From: Macrostomum lignano | Lineage: Eukaryota | DNA: 64,000 nt | NCBI GenBank assembly: GCA_002269645.1 | Contig: NIVC01000176.1 | Location: 248,001-312,000 of the forward strand | Direction of reading: 5' to 3' | In this document: positions 12,868 to 45,345 of the stretch, in pieces | How the letters are laid out: the number at the start of each line of letters is the position of its first letter | Position numbering within the stretch: the stretch's first letter is position 1 | Program-made: the position numbers and the translations under genes | Notes under the pieces: model-generated | Databases searched by the model: none | The model's input: only the letters and a program-made list of their open reading frames with translations | What the model was told of the DNA's origin: nothing

Positions 12868-13501
12868 CACAGAACTTACACAGAATGCTCAATCAGCGAT
12901 TTAATGAAATTAAACTGCGTAGAAATAGAGATGCGTACAAACTACTAATCCGGTGAAGAAACATAAGTAGCCATAGACTATTACTCAAGTGTGTAGCACA
13001 AGACCGCCTGATTTATTAAGTCAGTAACCAGAAACCATGCAGCAATCGAAACGTAAAACGTGAAACGTAGAAACCAGTTAAACTGGAGCACAAAACGTTT
13101 TGAAGTGATGCAACTCAAAAAGTTGGATAAAAAACGGACAAGTGTCATTAAAGCACTGCCATTAGTTGCCAACGTTCATTCGCAAAAATTTCTTGCTCAC
13201 TGCCCAGCTTGCTTCCTCTTCCTTTGCCTTTGAGTTTCCCGTCGCTGATTGCTGCACCAATGGTGCAGCCGTAGGCGGCAATACAGCGCTGCAAAGCTTC
13301 ACGTTTCACGTTTTACGTTTCGATTGCTGCATGGTTTCTGGTTACTGACTTAATAAATCAGGCGGTCTTGTGCTACACACTTGAGTAATAGTCTATGGCT
13401 ACTTATGTTTCTTCACCGGATTAGTAGTTTGTACGCATGTCTGTTTCTACGCGGTTTAATTTCATTAAATCGCTGATTGAGCATTCTGTGTAAGTTCTGT
13501 G
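12868..13501. mobile_element. Non-autonomous DNA transposon / foldback element with 201-bp TIRs and 8-bp TSD
   Basis: 12868-13068 is the reverse complement of 13301-13501 with 3 mismatches seen. AACAACAC flanks both ends (12860-12867 and 13502-13509). Confidence 0.92.
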
Positions 13502-13525
13502 AACAACACTGCACGGGCCAGCACC

Positions 13526-19623: not shown

Positions 19624-21145
19624 ATGGCCCTCAATAAAGTAAATATGTATAAAAAAATTTATAAATGGCAAAAAATAACCCTATTATTAAGGCAAAATGC
19701 CTTTTTTGTCCTATAGTACTATGTTTATATTTTTAGGTTTGCAATTTACCTTGGCTAGATCTTTTGCTAGCAAAATGGGCTAGGTTGGCCAGGTATTAAA
19801 TGTGTATGGTCTCAATATATTTATTCAAAAATTTTGTTCATTTGATCATTTTGCTTCATTTTAAACATTTTTGCATTTTGTAGTAATGTGTTATGATTTT
19901 TATTTAGTTTTTATGTACTTTTTTAAATTTTCACTTTTTCACTTTTTTCCTTTTTTGTTTCTTTGCTTTTTGCTTTCTCATCTTTTGTTTTTGGTAATCA
20001 ATTTCGTAGCTACCTATCCTTGGTTTACCACAATTTCTATTAGTTAGATTGGCTAAGTTAGGAAGTAGTTGGGTATATATGATTTAATAAAATAGTATAA
20101 ATATTGAATGATATGATTTTATCAAATAATCTTATAAACTAAAATTAAAATGATTCCATGTATGTATACAATTGAAAAATTAACAATTTAGAATTTTAAC
20201 TATCTTTAAAAAAGAAAAGATAGTATCAATATCTGTTTCTATTTTTCCATGCATTTTGACTATATAAGTCATCATCATGGTAGGGAATTTGTTTATTTGA
20301 TTGAAATAGTCAGTTTTGATTGAAATTAGGTTCTAATAAAAATGCTTAATATTTTAGAAATATAAACAAGAATTTCATTGTGTAATCAATAATCAATGAT
20401 TTTACAGTAACCAATCTATTTATTCTTACAACATTGTTTACAAAGCAGCAATGATCATTTTATCCAATGTTCCTTTACCTTAGTATAGTATATAGGTGGT
20501 TCTTCATTATTTCTTTGTAACATCTAACATTTTAAACATCTAAATTTGTAAGCAAAATTTATATATAGCATTATAGGGCACATGGAATATTGGAATTAAG
20601 TCTGCAGCAATGTTTGCCATAAATTACCCAACTTTGGAAACAATCTTTTCATAGATTTTTTACCATTTATGGAAGGCTTTTTCTGTTTTTTTACTTTGAA
20701 CTTTTAAATTCCAAAAATGAAAAGACAAATAAACAAATAAAACTAAATGACAAACATATTAAAAGCTTAAGTTAGTAGCAGTTGCACAGTAAAATTTTAA
20801 TAGCTAGAGATAAGAAAAGACAATGACCTTTGTGTGTCACTTGCACTTTTTTACTTTTTCAAAATTACTAAAAAATGTAATCAATTGTACATATATTTTT
20901 GTTCTTTGAGCTATACAATAAACATCTTTTTAAAGCATCTTTATATTTTTAATAAAGATAAGTATCCTAAGTATATTTACCAATAATACAATCTGATTTG
21001 TACTCATATTTATTTGTATTTTTATTTTAACTTACCATGAGAATATTTAATCTGTTTTTTTTGTTAGTTTTGTTCTTAATTAATCTATGATAATTTATTT
21101 TAATTTAGATTTCTTCTTTTTAAAACCCGATTGTTTCAGTCTATA

Positions 21146-21335
21146 ATGGAAACCAATTCTGATGCCAATGGGGAAAATTACCAAAACCAGCAAGCTGCAC
21201 CTGTCTATGCACCTCGGCAATATCAGGTAAAGCTTGTAATGGCTTCGTGTCTATATGTCCTATTGGCTGTCTGTCTGTCTGTCTTTGTGTCTGTCTGTCT
21301 GTCTGTCTGTCTGTGTGTCTGTCTGTCTGTCTGTG

Positions 21336-21432
<97 letters not shown>

Positions 21433-24400
21433 TTGTCTCTCTGTCTGTCTCTCTTTGTCTCTCTGTCCATCTGCATCTGCCTGCCTAACTGCCCCCGCCT
21501 CAGATTGACATCGCCAGCGAAGGCATCAAGCGCAACATCATAGTGAAGCTTGACACGGGCAGCGGCAAGACTTTCATCTCCGTTATGCTTATTCGGTATT
21601 ATCTGGCCAACTCTCGAATTGAATTGGACAAGGGCGGTCAACGGTGTGTGTTTCTGGTGAAGAATGGTGAGTTGGCCTTCTAGTATTTGTTTATAAAGTC
21701 CTTTTTTAGGGTAGGCGAACTGACAAACCCAATCTTGACTTAGCCACCAAAGCCCTCACTCAGCCACCCCAGCCCTAAGCCAACTCAGCTCTCACTCAGC
21801 CACCTCAGCCCTCACTCAGCCACCTCAGCCCTCACTCAGCCACCTCAGCCCTCACTCATCCACCAAAGCCCTCAGTCAGCCACCCCAGCCCTCAGCCAAC
21901 TCAGCTCTCACTCAGCCACCTCAGCCCTCACTCAGCCACCTCAGCCCTCACTCAGCCACCTCAGCCCTCACTCAGCCACCTCAGCCCTCACTCAGCCACC
22001 TCAGCTCTCACTCAGCCACCTCAGCCCTCACTCATCCACTAAAGCCCTCAGTCAGCCACCCCAGCCCTCAGCCAACTCAGCTCTCACTCAGCCACCTCAG
22101 CCCTCACTCAGCCACCTCAGCCCTCACTCAGCCACCTCAGCCCTCACTCATCCACCAAAGCCCTCAGTCAGCCACCCCAGCCCTCACTCAGCCACCTCAG
22201 CCCTCACTCATCCACCAAAGCCCTTAGTCAGCCACCCCAGCCCTTAGTCAGCCACCCCAGCCCTCACTCAGCCACCTCAGCCCTCACTCAGCCACCTCAG
22301 CCCTCACTCAGCCACCTCAGCCCTCACTCAGCCACCTCAGCCCTCACTCAGCCACCTCAGCCCTCACTCAACCACCTCAGCCCTCACTCAGCCACCTCAG
22401 CCCTCACTCAGCCACCTCAGCCCTCACTCAGCCACCTCAGCCACCTCAGCCCTCACTCAGCCACCTCAGCCCTCACTCAGCCACCTGTTTCTGCTGCTCT
22501 CCAGTGCCGCTGGTCCGCCAGCAGGCCGCAGAGATTCGCCGCTGCCTGTTCACCGCCCAAGATTCCAAGGACGTTGGCGAATTCATTGGCGACATGGGTG
22601 GCGAAATGATCGACCTCTGGGCAGGCGACAAATGGCGTCAGATGTTTGAGCAGCACCGGGTCCTGGTGATGACTGCCGACATTTTCAAGGACCTTCTCAA
22701 CCACGCCAAGGCCAGGCCTCACTGGGTGTCTCTGCTAGTTCTGGACGAGTGTCATCACCTTGACAAGGGCGACGCCTATGCCGCAATCTGTCAGCGCCTG
22801 TTGGAGATGTCTCAGAAAGGCTGGGATCGGACTGGAATGCGGCTGGTTGGCCTTACCGCCTGTCTGTTTAATGGCAACATCAAGCGGAACAAACTGCAGG
22901 TAGGGATTAGATAGTGTGATAATCCGATGCTTTAATGTATTAGACACTGGGATAATCTGATCCTAGGAAGGATTAGACTCTGGGATAATCCGATCCTAGG
23001 AAGGATTAGACTGGGATAATCCGATTCTTTAACGTTTTAGGTACAGGGATAATCCGATCCTATGGGGGATTAGACACTGGGATGATCCAATCTTATGAAG
23101 GATTAGACACTGGGATAATCCGATCTTATGGATTATTAGGTGCTGAGATAATCCTGAGTCCTAATGACTGAGTGATATAATGCGATCTTCTGCCTTCAAA
23201 CAAACAAAAACACCGTGGGCTTCAAGATCATGTATGTCCACCCCTCCGTTGCTACGCTGCTTGTACTATTCTAGGCCCTGCCTATTTGCCCATTTCTATT
23301 GTTCTAGCTTAATTTCTAAGCCCTAAAAGTGAATTTTTTAACCTACCTGTTGCGACATTTCAGGAGCGACTTGATGAACTGCAGCGGAAGATGCTGGACG
23401 CTCGCATCGTCACCTCCACCCACCAGGAGGCCGAAGGATTTCGACTCCGCTGCAGCGAAGAGACGCTGCTCTACAAGCCGCTGTACAGCACTGAGGAGGA
23501 GAAGTCCGAGACCATCAGCGACCCGATCTACCTGCTGCTGTGCCGCTCCCTGGCTGACGCTAAACAGCGATTAGATAACGGCAGAGCTAAATCGGGTCGG
23601 AGTTCGAGGGGTCGGAGCTCCGGTTAGTCGCTTCAGATCAAATTATTAATCATATTTGATCAGATGGGTTTGAAGTCATACACTGCAGTGTTTGAGTTTT
23701 TTGAGGAATATGATTCTATAAAGGATTAGACACTGGGATAATCCAATGCTATGAAATATTAGACACTATGATAATCCGATCCTGTTGTGGATTAGACACT
23801 GGGATAATCCGATATTGTTGTGGATTAGACACTGAAATAATTCAATCTTTTTGAAGATTAGACACTGGGATAATCCGATCCTGTTGTGGATTAGACACTG
23901 GGATAATCCGATCCTGTTGTGGATTAGACACTGGGATAATCCGATATTGTTGTGGATTAGACACTGAAATAATTCAATCTTTTTGAAGATTAGACACTGG
24001 GATAATCCAAATATTTGAAGGATTAGACACTGGGATAATCCAAACCTGTGTAGGATTAGACACTGGGATAATCCAGACCTGTGTAGGATTAGACACTGGG
24101 ATAATCCAAACCTGTGGAGGATTAGACACTGGGATAATCCAAACCTGTGGAGGATTAGACACTGGGATAATCCAAACCTGTGTAGGATTAGACACTGGGA
24201 TAATCCAAACCTGTGTAGGATTAGACACTGGGATAATCCAAACCTGTGGAGGATTAGACACTGGGATAATCCAAACCTGTGTAGGATTAGACACTGGGAT
24301 AATCCAAACCTGTGGAGGATTAGACACTGGGATAATCCAAACCTGTGGAGGATTAGACACTGGGATAATCCAAACCTGTGGAGGATTAGACACTGGGATA

Positions 24401-27400
24401 ATCCAAACCTGTGGAGGATTAGACACTGGGATAATCCAAACCTGTGGAGGATTAGACACTGGGATAATCCAAACCTGTGGAGGATTAGACACTGGGATAA
24501 TCCAAACCTGTGGAGGATTAGACACTGGGATAATCCAAACCTGTGGAGGATTAGACACTGGGATAATCCAAACCTGTGGAGGATTAGACACTGGGATAAT
24601 CCAAACCTGTGGAGGATTAGACACTGGGATAATCCAAACCTGTGGAGGATTAGACACTGGGATAATCCAAACCTGTGGAGGATTAGACACTGGGATAATC
24701 CAAACCTGTGGAGGATTAGACACTGGGATAATCCAAACCTGTGGAGGATTAGACACTGGGATAATCCAAACCTGTGGAGGATTAGACACTGGGATAACCA
24801 GTTCAGAATTGCCGCCCTAGCGCTGGTATATAAGAGTACTGTATTCTATATTTTGTGTGAACAATATTTCCGCATTTCAAATTCGAATCGCCAGCCCCAG
24901 GCTCAGGCTCAAGCGAGTCGCCGTTTCGCAGATGCCACCGAGCCCTGTCGGATTCGCTGAGCTCGCTGAAAGAGCTCGGCCACTTCTGCTGCTTCCGGGT
25001 GATGCAGATGTATGTCAAGGAGCTGAGCGATGTCATTCAGGGCGCATCCGGGCCGCTGAAACCGGAAGAGCAGGACGCTTTAAAAGAGACGCAACAGATT
25101 CTGCTGGATGCATCTGAGCAGTACAAGCTGAAGGCGCTATCAGCCCAGACTCCCGAGGATCTGTGCTCGGAGAAGTGTCTGAAGCTGATGGATTCGCTGA
25201 TAAAACATCACAAAGAACTGCCGGATGGTGAGGCTTTTAGAGCCGTGGTGTTCACACAGGAGCGGGTCATTGCGATGGCTGTGAAGGAGTTCATGTGCGA
25301 GGTTGGTGCAGTTACTGTTTGTGTGCAAGTTCGTCTTTGCAATCTAGCATCTGGTATTTGGGATCTGGAATCAAGCATCTGGTATTTGGGATCTGGAAAT
25401 CAAGCATCTGGTATTTGGGATCTGGAATCAAGCATCTGGTATTTGGGATCTGGAATCAAGCATCTGGTATTTGGGATCTGGAATCAAGCATCTGGTATTT
25501 GGGATCTGGAATCAAGCATCTGGTATTTGGGATCTGGAATCAAGCATCTGGTATTTGGGATCTGGAATCAAGCATCTGGTATTTGGGATCTGGAATCAAG
25601 CATCTGGTATTTGCAATCTAGCATCTGGTATTTGGGATCTGGAATCAAGCATCTGGTATTTGGGATCTGGAATCAAGCATCTGGTATTTGCAATCTAGCA
25701 TCTGGTATTTGGGATCTGGAATCAAGCATCTGGTATTTGGGATCTGGAATCAAGCATCTGGTATTTGGGATCTGGAATCAAGCATCTGGTATTTGGGATC
25801 TGGAATCAAGCATCTGGTATTTGGGATCTGGAATCAAGCATCTGGTATTTGGGATCTGGAATCAAGCATCTGGTATTTGCAATCTAGCATCTGGTATTTG
25901 GGATCTGGAATCAAGCATCTGGTATTTGGGATCTGGAATCAAGCATCTGGTATTTGCAATCTAGCATCTGGTATTTGGGATCTGGAATCAAGCATCTGGT
26001 ATTTGGGATCTGGAATCAAGCATCTGGTATTTGGGATCTGGAATCAAGCATCTGGTATTTGGGATCTGGAATCAAGCATCTGGTATTTGGGATCTGGAAT
26101 CAAGCATCTGGTATTTGGGATCTGGAATCAAGCATCTGGTATTTGGGATCTGGAATCAAGCATCTGGTATTTGGGATCTGGAATCAAGCATCTGGTATTT
26201 TGGATCTGGAATCAAGCATCTGGTATTTGGGATCTGGAATCAAGCATCTGGTATTTGGGATCTGGAATCAAGCATCTGGTATTTGGGATCTGGAATCAAG
26301 CATCTGGTATTTGGGATCTGGAATCTAGCATCTGGTATTTGCAATCTAGCATCTGGTATTTGGGATCTGGAATCAAGCATCTGGTATTTGGGATCTGGAA
26401 TCAAGCATCTGGTATTTGGGATCTGGAATCTAGCATCTGGTATTTGGGATCTGGAATCAAGCATCTGGTATTTGGGATCTGGAATCAAGCATCTGGTATT
26501 TGGGATCTGGAATCAAGCATCTGGTATTTGGGATCTGGAATCAAGCATCTGGTATTTGGGATCTGGAATCAAGCATCTGGTATTTGCAATCTAGCATCTG
26601 GTATTTGAGATCTGGAATCAAGCATCTGGTATTTGAGATCTGGAATCAAGCATCTGGTATTTGGGATCTGGAATCAAGCATCTGGTATTTGCAATCTAGC
26701 ATCTGGTATTTGAGATCTGGAATCAAGCATCTGGTATTTGAGATCTGGAATCAAGCATCTGGTGTTTGGGATCTGGAATCAAGCATCTAGTGTTTTGGAT
26801 CTAGCATCTGAGATCTGGGATCTCGAATCAAGCATCTGGTATTTGGGATCTGGAATCAAGCATCTAGTGTTTGGGATCTAGCATCTGAGATCTGGGATCT
26901 CGAATCAAGCATCTGGTATTTGGGATCTGGAATCAAGCATCTAGTGTTTTGGATCTAGCATCTGAGATCTGGGATCTCGAATCAAGCATCTGGTATTTGG
27001 GATCTGGAATCAAGCATCTAGTGTTTTGGATCTAGCATCTGAGATCTGGGATCTCGAATCAAGCATCTGGTATTTGGGATCTGGAATCAAGCATCTGGTA
27101 TTTGGGATCTGGAATCAAGCATCTGGTATTTGGGATCTGGAATCAAGCATCTAGTGTTTGGGATCTAGCATCTGAGATCTGGGATCTCGAATCAAGCATC
27201 TGGTATTTGGGATCTGGAATTAAGCATCTGGTATTTGGGATCAGGAAATCAAGCATCTGATATTTGGGACTTGAAAATCAAGCATCTGGTATTTGGGATT
27301 TGGAAATCAAGCATCGGGGATCTGGAAATAGCCTAAAATAACTGTCGAGTTTTGTTGCTACGCCAATTAAAAGATGACCGGCTACAAAAGCGACCTGAGC

Positions 27401-28895
27401 TTCCTCCGGCCTGAGTTCGTCACCGGTCACGGCCTGTCCAGCGAGCAGTCAAACCAGGTGGCGATGTCTCTATCCCAGCAGGACCGCGTGCTCAAGCAGT
27501 TCCGCACAGGAGAAGTCAACACACTCATTGCCACCCGAGTCATCGAGGAAGGCATGAACGTCCGGCAGTGCAATCTGGTCGTGAAGTTCAACTTCCCGCC
27601 AGAGTTTCGTTCCTACGTCCAGTCGAAAGGACGCGCCAGAGCTGTTAAGTCGCGTTACGTTATGCTGGTAAATGAGGACGAGGAGAACGACTGCAAGTCC
27701 AAGCTGGTCTATTATCAGTGGCTGGACGAAGCGGTTCAACGCAGCCTGCTTAAAATGCGGGCCGCTTTTGATGCCATGTCGGATGAGGACTCTGAGGTAA
27801 GACACTCGCTTTGGCGCCTCTGGTGCTGGCGCCTCTGGTGCTGGTGCCTCTGGTGCTGGCGCCTCTGGTGCTGGCGCCTCTGGTGCTGGCGCCTCTGGTG
27901 CTGGCGCCTCTGGTGCTGGCGCCTCTGGTGCTGGCGCCTCTGGTGCTGGCGCCTCTGGTGCTGGCGCCTCTGGTGCTGGCGCCTCTGGTGCTGGCGCCTC
28001 TGGTGCTGGCGCCTCTGGTGCTGGCGCCTCTGGTGCTGGCGCCTCTGGTGCTGGCGCCTCTGGTGCTGGCGCCTCTGGTGCTGGCGCCTCTGGTGCTGGC
28101 GCCTCTGGTGCTGGCGCCTCTGGTGCTGGCGCCTCTGGTGCTGGCGCCTCTGGTGCTGGCGCCTCTGGTGCTGGCGCCTCTGGTGCTGGCGCCTCTGGTG
28201 CTGGCGCCTCTGGTGCTGGCGCCTCTGGTGCTGGCGCCTCTGGTGCTGGCGCCTCTGGTGCTGGCGCCTCTGGTGCTGGCGCCTCTGGTGCTGGCGCCTC
28301 TGGTGCTGGCGCCTCTGGTGCTGGCGCCTCTGGTGCTGGCGCCTCTGGTGCTGGCGCCTCTGGATATGACTATGAGATAGGGATTGTTTTGAATTCGATT
28401 CTCTGTATTAGAATGAGTTTAGATGGTCTAGAATATCTCCTTTGAGAACGTTACCGTGACAAGAATCGCTAAAGAGTCATTGCTAACAACTCACTGGTGA
28501 CCCTAGAGACTCTGGGGCGACTCTTGTAACTTTTTAATGACTGAAGCGGCTATAAAGCGACGGAGAGGCGACTGTTGAGTCATGGATCTGCACTTCTTCT
28601 TAATCCATTCAGCCCGACGAATCAGGGGCGACGGCTTCAACAGCTGACGCCAGCGAAGGCGCCGCACCGCTGGACCTGAGCGTCCGGAGCGATCACCCGG
28701 CTTATTACGAAGTGGCCTCTACCGGAGCCAAAGTCGGGCTGAAGACTGCCGTGAGCCTGATTAACCGGTGTGTGCTCTGACATGACTGCCGACCTGCAGT
28801 TTTTATAAAAGACAAAGACAGACAGACAGACAGACAGACAGGCAGACAGACATGCAGACAGACAGACAGACAGACAGACAGGCAGACAGACATGC

Positions 28896-28966
<71 letters not shown>

Positions 28967-29049
28967 CAGACAGACTGACTGACAGACAGACAGATAAGCA
29001 GACAGACTGACTGACAGACAGACAGACAGACACAGACAGACAGACAGGC

Positions 29050-29108
<59 letters not shown>

Positions 29109-29177
29109 CAGACAGACTGACTGACAGACAGACAGACAAGCAGACAGACTGACTGACAGACAGACAGACAGACAGAC

Positions 29178-29254
<77 letters not shown>

Positions 29255-29255
29255 C

Positions 29256-29292
<37 letters not shown>

Positions 29293-29309
29293 CAGACAGA
29301 CAGACAGGC

Positions 29310-29364
<55 letters not shown>

Positions 29365-29433
29365 CAGACAGACTGACTGACAGACAGACAGACAAGCAGA
29401 CAGACTGACTGACAGACAGACAGACAGACAGAC

Positions 29434-29510
<77 letters not shown>

Positions 29511-29511
29511 C

Positions 29512-29548
<37 letters not shown>

Positions 29549-32500
29549 CAGTAACATCCGACTGATTCTCCAACCGCTTAGGTACACCACTAGGCTGGCC
29601 TCCATGGGCTGCACCAGGCCCCCATCGCCGTACTTCGACACCGCGCTGAACCCAACCTCGGGCCGCTATCGCTGCCGCCTGTTCCTGCCCAGGCCCTGCC
29701 CCATTGTGCAGCCGGTGCAGTGCCGGGGCGACCGACTCTCCGCCGATGATGCCAGACGATCTGCCGCTCTGGAGGCGGTGCGCCTCCTGCACAAGACGGG
29801 CGAACTGGACGATCACCTGCTGCCGAGTGAGCGGGAGGCTCGCTGCGCCGTGGAAGAACTGCGCAGCTACGAGCCGGGACAGGTGACACTGAGATTGATT
29901 TTCCAAAACCACTGTCTATTGCCTTTAAAAGCTTTTTCAGAAATTCACCTTTCAATATTCTCGGAATTTCCTATTTCTTAGATTCTTCTAAATCTCCTCT
30001 TTTCAAGGTTTTCCTAAATTTCCTCTCCAAGATTCTCTTAATTCCCCCTTCCCAAGATTCTCTTAATTCCCCATTCCCAAGATTCTCTTAATTCCCCCTT
30101 CCCAAGATTCTCTTTATTCCCCCTTCCCAAGATTCTTATAAAATTCTCTCTTTTCGAGGTTCTCCGAAATTCCCTCTTTCCGGAGATTCTCCAAAATTCC
30201 ATCTTTCCGAGATTCCACGACTCCACGGCCCCAGATTCACTTGCTTGAAATCCCCTTCACCAAGATTTGTACAGCACAAATTCTCCACACGTCTCATGCC
30301 TTGCAGGGCACGCGCGGCCGTCACGCCTGGCTGCCGAAACCCGTCGCCAGAGCCAGCAGCTCCTCAGCTGCCATCGGGCACCAGATTGCCTTCGACAGTG
30401 GCAGCGACAGCCACACCTCAACAGCAGCTCCACTGTTCTACTGTCACAGGCTGGACGTGAAGCTGCCGGGCCTTCACCTGCCCCCCTGCGACTGGCAGCC
30501 CGCCCTGCTTACCTGCGGCGCTCCGCTACCCGACAGCCTCGCTTTTCCGCTGTTTCTCGGATGCGAGCCGGCCGAATTCCGTCTAGGACCCGGCCAGGCG
30601 CTGAGGCTGACGGAGGGTCAACTGGCCCAGCTGGTTGCCGCCCAGGCGCCTCTGACCCGCCTGATGCTGCGGTGGCACGAGCCGGTGCAGATGAAGGGCC
30701 TGAGATTTTATTGGCCTCCTAGCGGCGGCGGGTGCGTCCGGAAGGAAGGGAGGAGGAAGGGGGGTTGTAGCCTAGTGGTTGGAGCGTCAGACTCACGACT
30801 GGAAGGTCGGGGGTTCGATTCCCGATCCTACTGGAACAATTTGTATCCTTGAGCAAGACAACTCAACTCTGCATTGCTTCAGTTCTCCCAGCTGTAAAAT
30901 GGGTGCCAGCATTAGCTGGGGTAATTGAGGCTGTGTGTGGCGACCCCCCAGTCCTTGGACTGAACAGCCGTACGCAGCCTTCAGATGCACCGCGCAATAG
31001 CTGCGGCTGAGCTGTCGGTTGCACATCTGCTCACTAAGGCAGATCTGAAGATTTACTGTCACAGCTGATAATAATCAATTATTATTATCATTATCATTAT
31101 TATTACTCTGAACAGCACGCGGATGATGGTAGACATGTTCTTAGGAATCTCAATTAATAGTTGCTTCAGCCCTCCATAAATTAACAGTAAAACAGTTTGC
31201 ATCAGCTCTGACTTTCTTGGTCACTGGCTTTTTACCCAGGCGGTGCTTCTGAACCTTCAAAAGAGGACACCAGACGACTATGAACGTCCTGTTGCGACTA
31301 TGTCAGATTTTTTTATCAAGCTTCTCAATAATGGGGCAAACCTAAACTGCCGGACATCCTTAGCTAGTCTCTTTAGTTCTCTTAAAATCTTCCCTTAGTA
31401 GTTCGACGGGCAGAAAGAAATCGAACCCCCGACCTTTCAGCCGTGGGTCCGACGCTCTAACCACTAGGCTTCAACCCTCCCTAGTATAAACAGTTTTTGT
31501 TTCCCTAAAAAACGTGTTGTACGAAACATATCGGTTTAATAATAATTAAATTGACTTCCTTCCCCATGACAGCCCCAATGAGGCAGAATCAGAGCACCCA
31601 GACGGAGCTGTGGAGCCCATCTGTCAGCTGATTGCGGTGGTTCGGAGCGATTTAGACAACCAGCCCAATGGCAGTATAGACTGGGACCTGCTCAGCCACC
31701 TGACCAGCCCGGACCCACTGATTGGACCGGCCATTGTGGAGGTCGCTGCCAATCGCGACGTGCTGAAGCCTGGAGTTCTGGTACAGCGGCTGCAGGACAG
31801 GGGGACAAAGTCCTGGTGAGTACAAACTACCACAGAGAATCTGTCCCATAAACTACCACAGAGAATCTACCCTAGAAACTACCACAGAGAATCTACCCCA
31901 TAAACTACCACAGAGAATCTGCCCCATAAACTACCATAGAGAATCTGCCCCATAAACTACCACAGAGAATCTGCCCCATAAACTACCATAGAGAATCTAC
32001 CCCATAAACTACCACAGAGAATCTACCCCATAAACTACCACAGAGAATCTACCCCATAAACTACCACAGAGAATCTGCCCCATAAACTACCATAGAGAAT
32101 CTACCCCATAAACTACCATACAGAATCTACCCCATAAGCTACCACAGAGAATCTACCCCATAAACTACCATAGAGAATCTACCCCATAAACTACCACAGA
32201 GAATCTACCCCAGAAACTACCACAGAGAATCTGCCCCATAAACTACCACAGAGAATCTGCCCCATAAACTACCACAGAGAATCTACCCCATAAACTACCA
32301 TAGAGAATCTACCCCATAAACTACCACAGAGAATCTACCCCATAAACTACCACAGAGAATCTACCCCATAAACTACCACAGAGAATCTACCCCATAAACT
32401 ACCACAGAGAATCTACCCCATAAACTACCATAGAGAATCTACCCCATAAACTACCATAGAGAATCTACCCCATAAGCTACCACAGAGAATCTACCCCATA

Positions 32501-35500
32501 AACTACCATAGAGAATCTACCCCATAAACTACCATAGAGAATCTACCCCATAAACTACCATAGAGAATCTACCCCATAAGCTACCACAGAGAATCTACCC
32601 CATAAACTACCATAGTGAATCTACCCCATAAACTACCACAGAGAATCTACCCCATAAACTACCATAGAGAATCTACCCCATAAGCTACCACAGAGAATCT
32701 ACCCCATAAACTACCATAGTGAATCTACCCCATAAACTACCACAGAATCTACCCTATAAATTACCACAGAGAATCTACCCTATAAACTACCTAAGAATCT
32801 GTTACTTATAAAGAATAGCAATTTTAAAATCCTGGCAACCCGGCCACCCCAGGCACTATGTGACCTCTATCCGACCCAACGGCCTGGTTGAGTTCAGCCG
32901 CACGCCCCATCTGGACGCTCTGGTGTACAACCCCAATGCAGCCAAAGGTCGCATGGCTCGCCTGCTATCTCGACAGAACAAGACCAGCGTTGACCGGGTT
33001 AGCCGCCTCTTGGCGATGCCCGGCATTCAAGTGCGACTTTGGTGTCAGCTGAGAGCCATGCCAGCCATTGTGTACCGGATTAACCAGCTGCTGCTAGGCT
33101 GCGAGCTCATGTCCCTGCTTCAATCGGCTCCGCTGTCAACTGGCTGCGCTGTGGATTCGAACCCGCGACTTATCTACTCTGGCTGTAGTCGTGCGGCTGA
33201 TCAGCAACTGTCTGTGGAACAGCGGGCTCTTATGAAGTTTGACGTTATGGAATGGATTGTTGCAAATGGGTGAGACTAGCTGACGGTTATCTATTCACTC
33301 TAATGCCTCATTTGGCCCTCTGACTCCTCAGTTGGCACTCTGATGCCTCACTTGGCACTCTGATCACTTGGCACTCTGATGCCTCACTTGGCACTCTGAT
33401 GCCTCACTTGGCACTCTGATGCCTCACTTGGCACTCTAAATGCCTTACTTGTCACTCTAATACCTCACTTGGCACTCTAAATGCCTTACTTGGCACTCTG
33501 ATGCCTTACTTGGCACTCTGATGCCCTACTTGGCACTCTGATGCCCCACTTGGCACTCTGATGCCTCACTTGGCTCTCTGATTCATCACTTGGCACTCTG
33601 ACTCCTCACTTGGCACTCTAATACCTTACTTGGCACTCTGATGCCTTACTTGGCACTCTAAATGCCCCACTTGGCACTCTAAATGCCTTACTTGGCACTC
33701 TGATACCTCACTTGGCACTCTAAATGCCTTACTTGGCACTCTAATGCCTTACTTGGCACTCTAAATGCCTTACTTGGCACTCTGATGCCTTACTTGGCAC
33801 TCTGATGCCTTACTTGGCACTCTGATGCCTTACTTGGCACTCTGATTCCTTACTTCGCACTCTGACTCCTCACTTCTCTTGCTCTACAGTATTGCATGTA
33901 ATCGCATTCCCAAATCTTTTGTTGCGCCAACTTCACTTCCGCCCCCCCCACCTGCCCCCTCCAGTTTCCGCTCCCCCGACAGCGGGTCAGGTCTGACCCT
34001 CACCGGCTGCCTCCAAGCGGTCACGCTGACCCACGCCAACGACTTTCACAGCATGGAGCTGTTGGAGACCCTGGGCGATGCTCGGCTGAAATTCACCGTC
34101 AGCACCCGCCTGTTCCATGATAGCGACCACACCGTGTCGGAGGGCCGCCTCACCCGGCTGCGAATGCGTGAGATTCGCAATGCTTTCCTGCACTGTGCGG
34201 CCAAGGAGAAGCGTCTGCATCGCTTCGTGTTCGCTCAGGTAGGTTGGGTACAGGTGTGGCTTGATTAGGGACAGGTGTGGCTTGATTAGGGACAGGTGTG
34301 GCTTCATTAGGGACAGATGTGGCTTAGTTAGGGACAGCTGTGGCTTGATTAGGGACAGGTGTGGCTTGATTAGGGACATGTGTGGCTTAGTGAGGGACAG
34401 GTGTGGCTTAGTTAGGGACAGGTGTGGCTTGATTAGGGACAGGTGTGGCTTGATTAGGGACAGGTGTGGCTTGATTAGGGACAGGTGTGGCTTGATTAGG
34501 GACAGGTGTGGCTTGATTAGGGACAGGTGTGGCTTGATTAGGGACAGGTGTGGCTTGATTAGGGACAGATGTAGCTTAGTTAGGGACAGGTGTGGCTTAG
34601 TTAGGGACAGATGTAGCTTAGTGATGGACAGGTGTGGCTTAGTGATGGACAGGTGGGGACCTACTTAAGTCACCTACGGAATAATTAGGTAAGGTGAGGC
34701 ACTGAAGAATTTCTGCTCCGACGCATGCAGGACGCCAACAAGCCGGAGAACTATCAGCCGCCGTGCGCCCGACCCGACGCCGACCCCACCGCCGACGCTA
34801 GCTCTGCCAACCGACGCTGGTGCTGCAATTTGGCCGACAAAAGTGTCGCTGACGTGGCCGAAGCTCTGACTGGCCTCATCCTGTCTGCCTGCGGTGGCGA
34901 CGCCGCCGACGCCTTCTTGCGCTGGCTCGGCGTTCCATCGGCCTCGCTGCCGACCCCGGCGGAACCGGCCGCTACGACGCTTCTGTTGCCGGGCGAAATC
35001 GGCGTCGAATCACCCGATTTTGTTAAGTTTTGGGGGATGGCGGATCTCGACCAGCTGGAGGTGAAGCTCGGCTACAAGTTTCGTCGGCGAGAGTTTCTCC
35101 TGTCGGCTGTGACTCACTCGACATTCACGTGGAATCACGTGACCGACTGCTACCAACGATTGGAGTTCCTTGGCGATGCCGTTATTGATTATTTGGTGAC
35201 GCATTACGCTGTCTGCGACTGCATGGACACTGGCTCGCCGGGTGAGTCCCGCGTGTGACTCTGATTGGCTGTCATTTCAGTTGGACCATTCTGATTGGCT
35301 GTCATTTCAGTTGGACCATTCTGATTGGCTGTCATTCCATTTGGACTATTCTGATTGGCTGTCATTTCAGTTGGACTATTCTGATTGGCTGTCATTCCAG
35401 TTGGACTATTCTGATTGGCTGTCATTCCAGTTGGACCATTCTGATTGGCTGTCATTTCAGTTGGACTATTCTGATTGGCTGTCATTCCAGTTGGACTATT

Positions 35501-37071
35501 CTGATTGGCTGTCATTCCAGTTGGACCATTCTGATTGGCTGCCATTCCAGTTATATCATTCTGATTGGCTGCCATTCCAGTTGGACTATTCTGATTGGCT
35601 GTCATTCCAGTTGGACTATTCTGATTGGCTGTCATTCCAGTTGGACCATTCTGATTGGCTGCCATTCCAGTTATATCATTCTGATTGGCTGCCATTCCAG
35701 TTAGATCATTCTGATTGGCTGCCATTTTAGTTGGAGTATTCTGATTAGCTATTGAAATTTCCTTCAATCAGGTGCCGTCACGGATCTCCGAATGTCGCTG
35801 ACCAACAACAATCTCTTTGCCGCAGTGGCCGTGTCACACGGCCTCGAGTCGCACCTGCTCTCGATGGACGAGCCGCTGCAAGATCTCATTATGGAATATC
35901 GAGAAAGCGCCGCCCAGTTCGATGGCCCGGACCGGTTCCGAAGGCTGAGCGACCAGTTCGTGGCCGATGCTGGAGCCGACGCAGCTCGGGTTGTCCGTCT
36001 GTCCGCCGTCAAGGTGAGTCCAGGGGCGTTCGGTAACTACCGATATGTACAGTTTGACCAATAGACTGGACGAATATGAGTTTGTGTCATGAGTTTAGTC
36101 GGTTGAAGGGTCGCTGTACACCCTGTGTGATTGTGTGCATGAGTAGAGTATCCGTTAAAAACGATACCATGACAATGATCACTAAAAAGTCGTTGCAAAC
36201 AACTCACTGGTGAAGCTAGCGACTGTAGCGTCAAATGCGACGGAGAGGCAAACTGTTGCGTCACAAGCGCGACGCAAATGCGCTTCTTCAAACACAATCC
36301 AGTGACTCTATAGCGACTCTAAGCACGCCTCAGATACGACTCGTGACTCTTGAGCAACTCTTTGATGACTTGCATCGTGACATCTCGTGGTTTGGAGTCA
36401 CTTCTTTCCAATTTTATTTGTGTCATCTGCAACGACCATGAAAAGACTCTGGGAGGGGGGGGGGGAAATTGGACAGAATTCTCACCCTCCTCGTCTCATA
36501 ATCAACCCAGGCTCTTGGCGACCTAGTCGAGTCCCTAGTTGGCGCCGTCTTCGCCGATTCCGGCTGGTCGCTGTCGGCCGCCTGGTCGCTGATCCGCCGC
36601 CTCATGTCGGAGCCGATGCGCGACTTCCTGGCCGAGCCGCCCCGCAACCCGGTGCGCCAGCTGCACGAGACCGCCGCCTCCATGGGCCTGGCCGTCAATT
36701 TCGAGATGCTGCAGTCCATGTCGTCGTCGACAGAGTCGCAGTTGACACCCGACGTGGCTGCCGCCGCAGACGCCCTGGCGGCCACCCGGATGCGCTTGCG
36801 AGTTGGCAGCGGCTTCGTCTACGAGGAGGCGGAGCGCAACAAGCGGCTGTGCCGGGTGGCTCTGGCCAGGCGATTCCTGACGGATCCGGCCGTGTGCAGC
36901 AGCGCCGGCGGCGGTGTCGTCGGCGGCAGCAAGCGTAAATCACCACCGTCAGTCAGCGAAAGCGAGGGTGACGGCGAAGGCGAAGTCGAGGTTGAAACTG
37001 CCGCTGTCAATAATGTTGCCGATGTTGTTGTTGGCGTTAGTTGTACCACGCAGCCAGCTGTTTTGATTTAA
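21146..37071 (+). CDS. dicer: Dicer endoribonuclease (15 exons, ~1610 aa): DExD/H helicase, DUF283, platform, reduced PAZ, RNase IIIa/IIIb, dsRBD
   Basis: Exons 21146-21226, 21504-21666, 22505-22899, 23364-~23622 (donor uncertain), 24901-25301, 27374-27796, 28613-28767, 29582-29882, 30307-30731, 31573-31815, 32853-33269, 33983-34238, 34731-35241, 35772-36013 and 36511-37071 are phase-consistent (4833 nt). Motifs: [26 protein letters not shown]-like [115 protein letters not shown] and [10 protein letters not shown]. Confidence 0.96.
21268..21470. repeat. (TCTG)n microsatellite, Dicer intron 1
   Basis: Visible tetranucleotide run. Confidence 0.97.
21745..22485. repeat. 20-bp minisatellite, Dicer intron 2
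   Basis: Unit ctcactcagccacctcagcc. Confidence 0.95.
22900..24800. repeat. ~33-bp minisatellite family in Dicer introns 3 and 4, spanning exon 4
   Basis: Core ggattagacactgggataatcc is degenerate at 22900-23150 and 23720-23990, and homogeneous at 24000-24800. Confidence 0.9.
25335..27325. repeat. 28-bp minisatellite (~2 kb), Dicer intron 5
   Basis: Unit atctggtatttgggatctggaatcaagc with shorter variants. Confidence 0.97.
27812..28362. repeat. 15-bp minisatellite, Dicer intron 6
   Basis: Unit ggcgcctctggtgct; spuriously extends ORF 27374..28369. Confidence 0.97.
28815..29549. repeat. (CAGA)n microsatellite, Dicer intron 7
   Basis: Visible tetranucleotide run. Confidence 0.97.
30761..30985 (+). 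mobile_element. tRNA-derived SINE with CORE-like body, Dicer intron 9
   Basis: A-box TAGCCTAGTGG and B-box GGTTCGATTCCC, followed by ccttgagcaagac...ctgcattgcttcagtt...ctgtaaaatggg, which resembles the MIR/CORE domain. A second copy is at 45134. Confidence 0.8.
31418..31478 (-). mobile_element. Truncated SINE head (tRNA-like part only), inverted
   Basis: Reverse complement gggttgaagcctagtggttagagcgtcggacccacggctgaaaggtcgggggttcgat aligns to 30761-30822. Confidence 0.8.
31823..32795. repeat. 26-bp minisatellite, Dicer intron 10
   Basis: Unit aaactaccacagagaatctaccccat. Confidence 0.97.
33305..33875. repeat. 20-bp minisatellite, Dicer intron 11
   Basis: Unit cacttggcactctgatgcct. Confidence 0.95.
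34245..34660. repeat. 21-bp minisatellite, Dicer intron 12
   Basis: Unit gattagggacaggtgtggctt. Confidence 0.95.
35258..35755. repeat. 30-bp minisatellite, Dicer intron 13
   Basis: Unit attctgattggctgtcattccagttggact. Confidence 0.96.
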
Positions 37072-39911: not shown

Positions 39912-42900
39912 ATGGCCCGGTTCTCTCTGCTTTCTGCGATTCTCCTGCACCTGGTGGTTGTCTCCATGCAGCAGGGCTACGATGAGCCCCTCGGTGAGTT
40001 ACCATTGTCTGGCCTTCGTGCTACTTGTTCGATTAGCTTTATAGCTTTATTTGCGATTAGATCGATTAGCTCGTCACAATCCCTTTATAAAGCGCATTAC
40101 TAATTTATAATGCTCTGATGAGTATTGAGAACCCAAGCAGTGGCCATAGAGACAGTGAGAAGCCAATCAGTGGCCACAGAGACAGTGAGAAGCCAAGCAG
40201 TGGCCACAGAGACCATGAGAAGCCAAGCAGTGGCCATAGAGACAGTGAGAACCCAAGCAGTGGCTACAGAAACAGTGAGAAGCCAAGCAGTGGCCACAGA
40301 GACAGTGAGAAGCCAAGCAGTGGCCACAGAAACAGTGAGAAGCCAATAGTAGCCATAGAGACAATGAGAAGCCAAACAGTGGTCACAGAAACATTGAGAA
40401 GCCATATATTCCACCACTGCATCAAACTCTTCATACACTAGATGTGAAGCTACTTATCAAGTAGCATAAGCCACGCATAGCCATTGCTGAACCCCCACAA
40501 TCCGCAGACATTCGACAGCGACTCGGCAGCAGCTCGGTGGCGAAGATCAACGACCAGATCCCAATACAGTTCAATGCTATGTACCTCTACGAAGCTATGG
40601 TAAGTTTTTTTCCTGATTCAAAGTCGCCACCCAACCAACTTACTTCGTGTTAAACCCTAGGCGGAGTGTCAGGGGGTGCGAGCGTACCTTGAGCTCACGC
40701 CCACCCTCAAAGTTGTTCAAAGTTTATGTTTCCTATCAATACTGTAATTTTGTGGAACTCTATCCGTTGAATCCCAGGGTTTTGACCGCGGATTCTTTCA
40801 ATCAAAATCCTTGGCTCAAACGCAAAACACGGGTAATCCGAACGCCCCGTCCGCAGGCCAGCTACTTCGGCAGGCCCAGCGTCGGTCTTCCCGGCTTCAA
40901 GAAATTCTTCAAGAGGGCCGCCGACAAGGAGCGAGAGCGCGCGCACAAACTGATCGACTACCTCAACATGCGGGGCGGCCACGTCAAGCTGAAGCCGATT
41001 ATCGTGAGTGCCTGGTCACCCGGTCACTTACCGTAATACCTGGTCATGGTCACCTAATACCTGGTCACCTAACATCTCGTCACCTAACACCTGGTCACCT
41101 AACACATGGTCACCTAACACCTGGTTACCTAACACCTGGTCACCTAACACCTGGTCACCTAACACCTGGTCACCTAACATCTCGTCACCTAACACCTGGT
41201 CACCTAACACCTGGTCACCTAACCTGGTCACCTAACACCTGGTCACCTAACACCTGGTCACCTAACACCTGGTCACCTAACTCTCGTCACCTAACACCTG
41301 GTCACCTAACACCTGGTCACCTAACCTGGTCACCTAACACCTGGTCACCTAACACCTGGTCACCTAACACCTGGTCACCTAACACCTGGTCACCTAACAC
41401 CTGGTCACCTAACACCTGGGCACCTACCGTAACACCTAGGCACCTACCGTAACACCTGGGCACCTACCGTAACACCTGGGCGCCTACCGTAACGCCTTGG
41501 CACCTACCGTAAAACCTGGGCACCTACCATAACACCTGGTCACCTAACACCTGGGCACCTACCATAACACCTGGTCACCTAACACCTGGGCACCAACCGT
41601 AAAACCTGGTCACCTAACACCTGGTAACCTAACACCTGGTCACTTACCGTAATACCTGGTCATGGTCACCTAACACCTGGTCACCTAGCACCTGGTCACC
41701 TGGTCCTAGTTACCTGGTCACCTAGCTGATCTCCTGGTCACCTGGTCACTTACTCCCCCGGTCCCAGTTTCCAGTGATTAGAACAAATTTACATTTTTTA
41801 ACCTGTAGCTTGAAGCTTTAATGTAGCCCCAAGGACTTTTATCTTTGTTGCAGCCTCCCAGAGATTACGAGTGGTCATCCGCCCCTGACGCAACCAAGGC
41901 GGCTCTTGACACCCAGAAGAACATCACACAGGAGTTGTACATCCTGCGAGATCGGGCCGACATGGAGAGCGACCCGCATGTGAGCCCTCATTCCTGTCAA
42001 ATCAATTAACTCACACTTATATATTGTATTTTGTGCTTCTTTGCTTTCACGCATTGTTCTACTGGCTTATCCATCAAGCCTAACGGTGATAAAATGGTGA
42101 CTGAGTGAATGACAGCTCAGAATTAGGTCACCTGATCCCCTGGGCACCTGATCCCCTGGGCACCTGATCCCCTAGGCACCTGATCCCCTGGGCACCTGAT
42201 CCCCTGGGCACCTGATCCCCTGGGCACCTGATCCCCTGGGCACCTGATCCCCTGGGCACCTGATCCCCTGGGCACCTGATCCCCTGGGCACCTGATCCCC
42301 TGGGCACCTGATCCCCTGGGCACCTGATCCCCTGGGCACCTGATCCCCTGGGCACCTGATCCCCTGGGCACCTGATCCCCTGGGCACCTGATCCCCTGGG
42401 CACCTGATCCCCTGGGCACCTGATCCCCTGGGCACCTGATCCCCTGGGCACCTGATCCCCTGGGCACCTGATCCCCTGGGCACCTGATCCCCTGGGCACC
42501 TGATCCCCTGGGCACCTGATCCCCTGGGCACCTGATCCCCTGGTCACCTGATCCCCTGGGCACCTGATCCCCTGGGCACCTGATCTCCTGGGCACCTGAT
42601 CCGCCTACACACTGAGGCATGTTGCTGATGCTGATTGGTCGGTTGGGTCAGCCCTAGCTGACCCGCTATTAACCTCCGTCCCGACCTCCCCACCATCAAC
42701 CAGCCAATCAGCGACGAGCAGAATTCTTCAATAGACTAATACGAGTATTCTATCCAATTATTTTATTTTCTACAAAAATGCTCACCTTAAACTTAAAAGA
42801 GAATAGCTGCATATGAATATTCTTTAAATTGCTATGTATATTTGTATAGTATAGCTACATATACTCTACGAAATTGCTACTAAAATCTTTAACTTCCAGC

Positions 42901-43034
42901 TGGTGAAATTCATCGAGTCGGAGTTGCTGACCGAGCAGGTGACCGGCATCCGGGATCTGCGGGAACTCATCGCCCGCTTGTTCAGGGCTGGCAGCGGCCT
43001 TGGCGAGGTCATTGTGGACAAGGAGCTCAACTAG
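39912..43034 (+). CDS. Secreted ferritin subunit (signal peptide; 5 exons, 193 aa)
   Basis: Exons 39912-39993, 40508-40599, 40857-41003, 41854-41979 and 42900-43034 (582 nt, phase-consistent). Protein: MARFSLLSAILLHLVVVSMQQG..INDQIPIQFNAMYLYEAMASYFGRPSVGLPGFKKFF..ERERAHKLIDYLNMRGG..AALDTQKNITQEL..DPHLVKFIESELLTEQV..GSGLGEVIVDKELN. Confidence 0.92.
40125..40400. repeat. 30-bp minisatellite, ferritin intron 1
   Basis: Unit agaagccaagcagtggccacagagacagtg. Confidence 0.93.
41010..41750. repeat. 15-bp minisatellite, ferritin intron 3
   Basis: Unit cacctaacacctggt and variants. Confidence 0.94.
42115..42609 (-). mobile_element. Dispersed minisatellite-bearing element, copy 2 (ferritin intron 4)
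   Basis: gctcagaattaggtcacctgatcccc...cacctgatccgcctacac is the reverse complement of both unique ends of 38508-39003. Confidence 0.75.
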
Positions 43035-44552: not shown

Positions 44553-45133
44553 CTGTGCTGTCGTACAAAAGTCGCGCCCCTATATGGAAATTCAAATCGC
44601 CCCCGTATTCTGCCTGCAGTTGTCGATAGTTTGAAGAAAGTCAATTTTACCAATAAAATTTCTGTATTGCTACTGCTCAGCGGATAGCAGTAGTATGTCT
44701 TGAGCATAAATGGACAAGCCGTGACTAGGAACTCTCTTAAGAAATGAAATCGTAAACCAAAGCAAACTATGAAGCGAAAAAAACGATTTTTCATTTCTGA
44801 ATGAAGCGGGGCATAAATCAGACAGGAGAAATCTCCCAACTTTTTTTCGGAGCACAGATCGTCAATCTTATTTCAGCTTGGGCTTCGGGGAGCTGAGGAG
44901 ACTCCATGTCACAGGATTTATTACCTATCTGTTAGCTTCAGTAGGTGGCACTAAAACTGGCAGCGTACGAGCTATTTTTTTGTCTTCGAATTCACTGACA
45001 TGAAACAATCAAGATAATTTATGCCTATGAGCTCCAGACTATCCTTGCAGTTTTTTTCTTGAACAATTTATCACAATTTGGACTCGATTCAACTCTTCTT
45101 TTTGCTTTCTGCGCTCTGTTTGTGTGTTAATAA

Positions 45134-45345
45134 GAGGGGTTGAGGCTTAGTGGTATAGAGCGTCAGACTCACGACTAATGAAAGGTCGGGGTTCGATTCT
45201 CGACCCACTCGACTCGGGACAATTTGTGTCCTTGAGCAGGAGAACACTTAACTCTGCATTGCTTCAGTTCACCGAACTGTAAAATGGGTGCCAGCATTAG
45301 CTTGGGTAATTGAGGGTGTGTGTGGCGGCCCCCTTGGACTGAGTC
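45134..45345 (+). mobile_element. tRNA-derived CORE-like SINE, second full copy
   Basis: Colinear with 30761-30985: head, ccttgagcag..ctgcattgcttcagtt..ctgtaaaatgggtgccagcattagc..gtgtgtggcg..ccttggactga. Confidence 0.8.

Follow-up and report, generated by a model that had tools for sequence, protein, structure and literature searches.

A Dicer-2 of the flatworm Macrostomum lignano appears to lack the loop-helix module of its PAZ domain

The length of Dicer products corresponds to the distance from an end anchored in the PAZ domain to the catalytic centre, taken along the connector helix, and long double-stranded RNA (dsRNA) may instead enter the enzyme via the helicase for processive, ATP-dependent cleavage (PMC7668257, PMC10328071). 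For fly Dicer-2, the helicase-initiated, ATP-dependent processing of long dsRNA is established: the helicase starts on blunt dsRNA and the platform-PAZ on dsRNA with a 3' overhang, and PAZ then receives the end of the threaded dsRNA (PMC7668257, PMC10328071). In addition, the phosphate pocket of the fly enzyme is needed for length fidelity (Kandasamy and Fukunaga, 2016, as cited in PMC10328071). Here, we analysed the Dicer-2 gene of the flatworm Macrostomum lignano, which is located in a stretch of 64,000 nucleotides of assembly GCA_002269645.1 (contig NIVC01000176.1, positions 248,001 to 312,000 of the forward strand). This whole stretch is referred to as the window, and all positions given below are counted from its first nucleotide. 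Fly Dicer-2 has a complete PAZ domain with a pocket for the 3' overhang; unlike it, the protein encoded in the window appears to be without the helix module and the pocket residues. Both proteins combine a RIG-I-like helicase, DUF283 and two RNase III domains (fly structures PDB 7W0B/7W0E), with a platform-PAZ-connector region that the window protein appears to share in its fold, and both are assigned to the siRNA-type paralogues that exist beside a Dicer-1.

Reduced Dicers have been described in other flatworms. Fontenla et al. (2017) call flatworm Dcr-2 'drastically reduced', with cestode proteins lacking PAZ and the dsRNA-binding domain (dsRBD) by hmmscan and trematode proteins consisting of RNase III domains only; Fontenla et al. 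(2021) describe the proteins of 'turbellarians' as heterogeneous, but with fragmentary transcriptomes suspected. According to these papers, no PAZ was found by hmmscan in the Dicer-2/Dicer-3 proteins of cestodes and trematodes; the cestode proteins keep the helicase, whereas the trematode proteins, unlike the window protein, have also lost the helicase half. Outside the flatworms, small RNAs are made by several Dicers without a recognisable PAZ, i.e., S. pombe Dcr1, budding-yeast Dcr1 and the enzymes of Dictyostelium and Tetrahymena, and S. pombe Dcr1 retains a PAZ-like fold (PMC10328071). Budding-yeast Dcr1 has one RNase III domain and no helicase, whereas the metazoan Dicer of the window is full-length, with part of PAZ deleted, and its two RNase III domains and helicase rule out a non-canonical Dicer of the budding-yeast type. 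The yeast enzyme is said, from work of Weinberg and colleagues in 2011, to be an 'inside-out' enzyme that measures by the cooperative packing of dimers.

The gene lies on the + strand and comprises 15 exons, with the ATG at 21146 and the stop at 37071. Its spliced product of 1618 amino acids (aa) is 100% identical to GenBank PAA88747.1 (P0126), annotated as 'hypothetical protein BOX15_Mlig002075g1'. In Fontenla et al. (2021), BOX15_Mlig002075 is named as DCR-2 and BOX15_Mlig011615g2 as DCR-1 of M. lignano, and the tree shown there has Mli11615g2 within Dcr-1 and Mli02075g1 on a long branch (1.52) located between the flatworm Dcr-2 clade and fly Dcr-2. The best full-length matches of the window protein are tick Dicer-2-like proteins, with 27% identity over 91% of the query. 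By this published assignment, the gene is the Dicer-2 (presumed siRNA-type) paralogue of M. lignano, and both the gene and its family assignment were already known.

The PAZ domain of this protein is markedly shortened. From the isoleucine of IDWDLL (residue 905) to the tryptophan of the connector helix (residue 1014) it measures 110 aa, while the same interval spans 157 aa in mammalian Dicer and has a median of 157 aa in 120 other Dicers, the next shortest being 140 aa; a sequence-only reading of the stretch had put the two lengths at 110 and about 157 aa, and both figures held. The N-terminal half of the PAZ remnant starts with IDWDLL in exon 10 (31573..31815, + strand; sequence and alignment), the end of which, ...DRGTKSW, is spliced to the start of exon 11 (32853..33269, + strand). 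Exon 11 codes for the strand HYVTSI, a tight turn RPNG, the hairpin remnant and then the Dicer insertion helix (sequence, alignment and AlphaFold), as well as for the last barrel strand and the connector helix (sequence, phmmer, alignment and AlphaFold). HYVTSIRP and NGLVEF are contiguous within this exon (32854-32895), so the strand is directly followed by the hairpin, as that reading had also stated. In MAFFT alignments with 12-13 other diverse Dicers, a single gap of 34-35 columns opened after HYVTSIRPN and before GLVEF, opposite the consensus LTPxSxFPxxxxxTFxxYYxxxYxLxxTxxxQ, that is, the loop-helix module (TFxxYYxxxY). In other Dicers, the missing segment comprises a loop, the aromatic helix and a short strand. 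MAFFT and AlphaFold place the deletion point at the codons AAC-GGC (N960-G961; 32878..32883, + strand), where other Dicers carry an additional 34-35 residues. The beta-hairpin is retained (32881..32934, + strand; BLASTP and alignments) and is equivalent to PLLDV...LNLLTP and to the polyclad sequence PLVEVCRLPTLHDTAVYRQP. Also retained is the connector, or ruler, helix (33031..33126, + strand), which phmmer aligned to mouse and human Dicer and which corresponds to AlphaFold helices 267-298.

The polyclad in question is Prostheceraeus vittatus, whose Dicer-2 (Pvi60657), obtained from supplementary data of Fontenla et al. (2021), forms part of one flatworm Dcr-2 group with the window protein in the published tree. 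Its only significant BLASTP alignment with the window protein (E 7e-5) begins at the first hairpin strand, where LVEF equals LVEV, and continues through the connector helix, while the polyclad region as a whole reads ...RWIVKSAS NLTPRSPFPYPDEASTFEEYFYKRYGTHISLNNN LPLVEVCRLPTLHDTAVYRQP..., indicating that in the window protein the hairpin is kept and the loop-helix module is missing. Together with the MAFFT gap, this alignment bears out the absence of the TFxxYYxxxY module that had been proposed from the letters. The two proteins share the hairpin, which is LVEVCRLPTLHDTAVY in the polyclad, and are similar in the connector helix and the dsRBD-like end; unlike the window protein, Pvi60657 keeps NLTPRSPFPYPDEASTFEEYFYKRYGTHISLNNN and the strand with H-Y-R at 925-927, and it passes the Pfam threshold for PAZ. 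As the module is kept in the polyclad, its absence points to a loss on the Macrostomum lineage. The PAZ HMM (PF02170), a check suggested in the same reading, left the window protein unmatched at E ≤ 10, whereas the polyclad Dcr-2 (30.2 bits, E 4.9e-7, above threshold) and a tick Dicer-2-like protein (22.8 bits, 9.5e-5) were matched as controls. Of the alpha/beta insert of PAZ, the hairpin is there and the helix and the loop are deleted. A second member of the family in the same genome, M. lignano Dicer-1 (BOX15_Mlig011615g2), has in the published alignment a degenerate helicase region; unlike the window protein, its PAZ is canonical, as seen from PSYRN, SFEEYYLKKY, the hairpin QPLLDVEQSSSRYNVLTPR and IPELC.

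Two other placements of the gap were considered and rejected. The one returned by hhalign keeps a degenerate 'helix' and drops the hairpin, with a per-column confidence near 0, and the polyclad hairpin match LVEVCRLPTLHDTAVY is much stronger. Pairwise MAFFT alignment placed the shortfall upstream in exon 10, which was rejected in view of the tick-like length of the half from IDW to the FYV strand, 47 aa as compared to 46-48 aa in tick Dicer-2-like proteins; this half also has matching hydrophobic strands, including WHYVTSI. Whichever placement of the gap is taken, the alpha/beta module is short of ~34-47 residues.

The sequence-only reading had also maintained that the gap lies inside exon 11 and that a missed exon could not fill it. 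The former part proved weaker than claimed, as the gap is 9 codons away from the exon 10/11 junction and a placement at the junction is equally possible; this closeness suggests that the deletion could have come from the loss of a small exon. The latter part stood. Intron 10 (31816..32852, + strand; repeat and ORF analysis) consists almost wholly of a 26-bp satellite (31824-32791, 37 copies); each of its frames is interrupted by stops, and the intron holds no open reading frame (ORF) of at least 40 aa. The paralogue g4, located on another contig, has the identical exon 10/11 junction and a shorter satellite array, and the coding sequences of g4, g2 and the copy in the window, g1, are alike across the PAZ deletion. 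The GenBank gene models are based on RNA-seq reads in a genome-guided assembly (Wudarski et al., 2017, PMC5730564). The intron stops, the g4 junction, the same sequence in three copies and the RNA-seq models together exclude a missing exon.

A tblastn search for a hidden module exon with five versions of the module returned only a marginal look-alike in intron 9, an ORF at 31252-31347 (+) resembling the polyclad Dcr-2 PAZ module with 31% identity over 32 aa. The score of this look-alike was reached by 2 of 200 shuffled queries, five queries having been tried, and it is absent from the transcript models. It was rejected as a lost exon, as it lies upstream of exon 10, in the wrong order, inside an element bounded by inverted repeats, and it probably arose by chance. 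An artefact, in which a helix-module exon was missed in annotation or was lost in assembly by collapse within the intron-10 satellite, would be compatible with the short distance between gap and junction, with a satellite of the kind that assemblies collapse and with the weak look-alike. However, the three loci, on different contigs, agree in junction and coding sequence although their satellite arrays differ in length, the exon structure is derived from RNA-seq, the satellite has stops in all frames, and the look-alike is out of order, repeat-bounded, marginal and missing from transcript models. We regard such an artefact as extremely improbable.

The structure of the cassette was predicted by AlphaFold2 on residues 745-1045 using an alignment of 14 rows, which resulted in a model with a pLDDT of 65.8 and a pTM of 0.70. 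In this model, the platform strands and a long helix are followed by the strands 194-199 (VLVQRL), 205-213 (KSWHYVTSI) and 218-223 (LVEFSR) and by the connector helix. The strands 205-213 and 218-223 run back to back, joined by the RPNG turn without an intervening helix. Of the platform-PAZ cap, the core of the beta-barrel is left, together with the hairpin, the insertion helix and the connector helix. The divergent platform domain is encoded by exon 9 (30307..30731, + strand; alignment A1, Foldseek, and AlphaFold strands 27-84 and helix 87-107). Foldseek matched the cassette model to mouse, human, fly, plant and Giardia Dicers and to the isolated human cassette (4NGB and related) with E 1e-7 to 1e-4 and TM about 0.45-0.5, fly Dicer-2 having a TM of 0.51, and to nothing else at significant level. 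Likewise, hhalign of the single sequence against a profile of other Dicers recognised the cassette with a probability of 96.6%. Fold matches to the platform-PAZ-connector region, from a model with pLDDT 66 and an alignment with distant Dicers, thus stand against the lack of any Pfam platform or PAZ match, and the model suggests that the cassette fold survives minus the module. An exhaustive HMMER search of 1.84 billion representative proteins with the platform-PAZ-connector region returned five M. lignano fragments only, and the only match of the PAZ region in a word-indexed protein search was a frameshifted model from the older assembly.

The residues that line the end-binding pockets were taken from human mutants and mapped onto alignment A1. 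In human Dicer, the 3' pocket was probed by Y926F/R927A (PMC8038994, citing Tian 2014 and Park 2011) and the 5'-phosphate pocket by R778A/R780A/R811A/H982A/R986A/R993A (PMC8038994). In the window protein, Y926 and R927, which belong to the wall of the 3' pocket opposite the lost helix, correspond to L and Q (exon 10). In exon 9, the loop with R778 and R780 is absent and R811 is replaced by G; in addition, R986 is replaced by H and R993 by N. Of the six basic residues that make up the 5'-phosphate pocket, five are therefore deleted or replaced, and the sixth, H982, is an Arg. The helix tyrosines of PAZ, which take part in the 3' pocket in PAZ structures, are absent as well. Y971 and Y972 were dropped as further candidates for the pocket, as they disagreed with the numbering set by H982, R986 and R993. 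As judged from the aligned residues, both anchoring sites are degenerate and not the helix alone, and this anatomy, the loop-helix deletion together with the degeneration of the pockets, very probably holds.

The PAZ remnant might still anchor ends if a pocket had been rebuilt from divergent residues, the candidates being the R at the H982 position, W950, Y953 and Y975, in which case the enzyme would measure from the end like any Dicer. The recognisable cassette fold (Foldseek, hhalign) and the well-conserved connector 'ruler' helix are in line with such a pocket, as are the generally low conservation of PAZ sequences, with PAZ-like folds hidden in fungal Dicers (PMC10328071), and the purifying selection on the cap (pN/pS 0.23, p 0.004; see below). 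On the other hand, a whole wall of the pocket is gone with the 34 residues, among them three Tyr and one Phe, Y926/R927 are L/Q, only one of the six positions in the phosphate pocket has escaped loss or change to a non-equivalent residue, and the polyclad Dcr-2, the closest available relative with the module, keeps all of these residues. Hence, we consider a rebuilt pocket unlikely.

The annotated copies g2 and g4 differ from g1 at 3 and 9 residues, respectively, and all share the deletion, while the ORF of 1618 aa is intact in the three copies. Between g1 and g4 (L001), introns are ~92-96% identical and the coding sequence is 99.3% identical, with 26 synonymous and 9 non-synonymous changes, resulting in a pN/pS of 0.11 (p 8e-10 vs neutrality). 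For the helicase and RNase III parts the ratio amounts to 0.05-0.06, and for the platform-PAZ-connector part, the cap, to 0.23, which is still below 1 (p 0.004); among the 9 amino-acid changes, 6 fall into the cap, where they are enriched 6.6-fold (p 0.007). From these comparisons and the RNA-seq-derived models, the gene is judged real, expressed and constrained, and the cap relaxed yet not free. A pseudogene was rejected on the grounds of pN/pS and the intact ORFs. Gene conversion between the copies could distort pN/pS, which is hinted at by the mosaic nature of g2: this copy shares K289N, L821P and N1495K with g4 and the other six with g1 (P0125, P0126, P0002), suggesting recombination or gene conversion among duplicates of a neopolyploid genome.

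The same data bear on the alternative that the protein no longer is a measuring Dicer, but a decaying duplicate, a helicase re-used for sensing or unwinding dsRNA, or a non-specific dsRNA nuclease. The very long branch in the published tree (1.52), the lack of any cap relative outside the species among the 1.84 billion representative proteins and the concentration of paralogue amino-acid changes in the cap (p 0.007) would agree with this. However, the three intact ORFs, the low pN/pS in the helicase and RNase III parts, the full set of catalytic and ATPase motifs and the transcript-derived gene models all speak against it, so that this alternative appears quite unlikely.

Outside the PAZ, Pfam identified ResIII/DEAD, Helicase_C, Dicer_dimer and two Ribonuclease_3 domains, and, down to E ≤ 10, no PAZ, Dicer platform or dsRBD. 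The RIG-I-like helicase is encoded by exons 2-6 (21504..27796, + strand; Pfam, motif columns and sequence), and its motifs I (DTGSGKT), II (DECH) and VI (QSKGRAR) are intact in sequence and alignment columns. It is followed by the Dicer dimerisation domain, or DUF283, in exons 7-8 (28613..29882, + strand; PF03368, E 1.7e-15, residues 622-713). Exons 12-15 (33965..37071, + strand; Pfam and catalytic columns) encode RNase IIIa and IIIb, a divergent dsRBD-like end and an acidic tail. PF00636 was matched twice (E 3e-28), both tandem RNase III domains being present, and all eight RNase III catalytic residues, i.e., four E/D pairs in IIIa and IIIb, are kept, with, e.g., RLEFLGD/GDLVESL in the catalytic columns. 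With two RNase III domains, a RIG-I-like helicase and DUF283, the protein falls into the class of helicase-containing Dicers, and its motifs and catalytic residues predict the catalytically intact, helicase-bearing enzyme that the sequence-only reading had assumed.

As both pockets are apparently gone, whereas helicase, DUF283, connector helix and the catalytic core are conserved, entry via the helicase is the most economical reading. The in-frame deletion of 34 residues removes the loop and the aromatic helix, one wall of the 3'-overhang pocket, and the enzyme would most likely be without canonical anchoring of ends with a 2-nt 3' overhang. Long dsRNA would probably be engaged via the helicase and threaded in an ATP-dependent manner, by analogy to fly Dicer-2 on blunt dsRNA, and the PAZ remnant may serve as a steric stop or scaffold only. 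Control of length would then be less sharp or different, possibly aided by a dsRBD partner. As M. lignano Dcr-1 has a canonical PAZ, the animal still possesses a Dicer that anchors ends, presumably those of pre-miRNAs, and the processing of these, which depends on end anchoring, may be left to Dicer-1. As a whole, a helicase-engaged Dicer-2 with a hollowed-out platform-PAZ cap, beside a Dicer-1 that anchors pre-miRNAs, is the best explanation and in our view a rather probable one. For the mechanism itself, helicase-dependent entry with the PAZ remnant as stop or scaffold and looser length control, we put the chances somewhat below even and propose it tentatively; the helicase-driven, anchor-free measuring that the sequence-only reading had put forward, with threading of blunt dsRNA and products of unusual size, would be plausible, as we infer from the fly enzyme.

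A more far-reaching version, a metazoan helicase-bearing Dicer without both end-anchoring pockets in which siRNA length is set by another ruler, seems rather doubtful. Length might be counted from the helicase/DUF283 ring or from a blunt steric stop, or might result from the packing of neighbouring enzymes. If this version were true, siRNAs of unusual or broader length would be expected, and the enzyme would strictly require ATP and dsRNA that is blunt or long.

Several points weigh against helicase-dependent entry in an enzyme lacking its pockets. An alternative, if low-confidence, placement of the gap by hhalign exists. The negative Pfam result for PAZ is weak when taken alone, since PAZ sequences are poorly conserved and S. 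pombe Dicer hides a PAZ-like fold. The structural model is of moderate confidence and was built from an alignment that was already gapped, and a pocket rebuilt from other residues would be compatible with it. In addition, the cap is still under purifying selection, indicating that it does something. Finally, helicase threading alone leaves the measurement of length unexplained.

What is already known includes, besides the gene and its family assignment, the occurrence of flatworm Dcr-2 proteins without a detectable PAZ and of PAZ-poor Dicers elsewhere. A full-length, helicase-bearing and constrained enzyme in which the loop-helix sub-module is cleanly deleted and both pockets have degenerated appears to be undescribed, and so does a loss specific to the Macrostomum lineage relative to the polyclad in a genome that keeps a canonical Dcr-1. 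The surprise is lowered by the presence of a Dicer-1 with canonical PAZ, by the published reduction of flatworm Dicer-2 and by the PAZ-poor Dicers of other organisms, and the protein is a natural variant of modest interest rather than a new kind of enzyme. As a constrained Dicer-2 without the pocket module and anchoring residues, it represents a natural deletion mutant that could show which share of the measuring falls to the pockets and which to the helicase and connector helix, in an animal that offers RNAi by dsRNA soaking as well as transgenesis. Furthermore, the module being present in the polyclad and lost in Macrostomum, the loss of a domain part is dated within flatworm Dicer-2 evolution, and 'no PAZ' calls by hmmscan can hide a precise sub-domain deletion.

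For the gene model, the near-identical database protein P0002 was projected onto the window by tblastn, and frame-preserving GT/AG splice pairs were then chosen. The exons on the + strand obtained by this projection and splice-site search are located at 21140-21226, 21504-21666, 22505-22899, 23364-23622 and 24895-25301 (exons 1-5), at 27374-27796, 28613-28767, 29582-29882, 30307-30731 and 31573-31815 (exons 6-10), and at 32853-33269, 33965-34238, 34731-35241, 35772-36013 and 36511-37071 (exons 11-15). In exon 15 (36511-37071), a C-terminal dsRBD-like region starting with NPVRQLHE aligns by eye with the polyclad protein; it contains an insertion, precedes a Gly/Ser/Glu-rich tail and was not matched by the Pfam dsRBD. 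UniProt models of the Dicer-2 gene from the older ML2 assembly (P0001, P0003, P0122-P0124) are frameshifted fragments that run through intronic satellites and carry misleading names such as 'Ig-like domain-containing' and 'ADF-H domain-containing'. Fontenla et al. (2017) reported no Dcr-2 in an older M. lignano assembly, which is probably explained by these frameshifted models.

The window is eukaryotic DNA with GT-AG introns rich in minisatellites. Between 21267 and 35750, nearly each intron of the Dicer gene has its own long minisatellite, and the units differ from array to array: CTGT, 20 bp, 33 bp (twice), 28 bp (73 copies), 15 bp and AGAC (185 copies), and further units of 25, 26, 20, 21 and 30 bp. 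The lengths of these arrays vary between the paralogues while the exons stay 99% identical. Intron 9 contains a 62-bp inverted repeat pair (30759-30820 / 31419-31480, 88.7% identical) of tRNA-like appearance that brackets ~720 bp, and the first arm with its flank recurs at 45132-45342 (82.6%). This unit probably is a SINE- or MITE-like element; ARAGORN found no tRNA anywhere in the window. A single-exon ORF for a protein kinase of 473 aa (13481-14899, +; Pkinase E 1e-33) precedes the Dicer gene by about 6 kb. The kinase neighbour is also found upstream of the paralogue g4 (L001 702-1495), indicating that the duplication was segmental. Other coding pieces on the + strand, at 8103-9525, 40617-43031, 52179-53801 and 58807-59265, belong to a TPR-repeat protein, a ferritin-like gene with at least 2 exons, a reverse-transcriptase fragment (RVT_1, E 3e-20) and an RNase PH / exosome-like exon.

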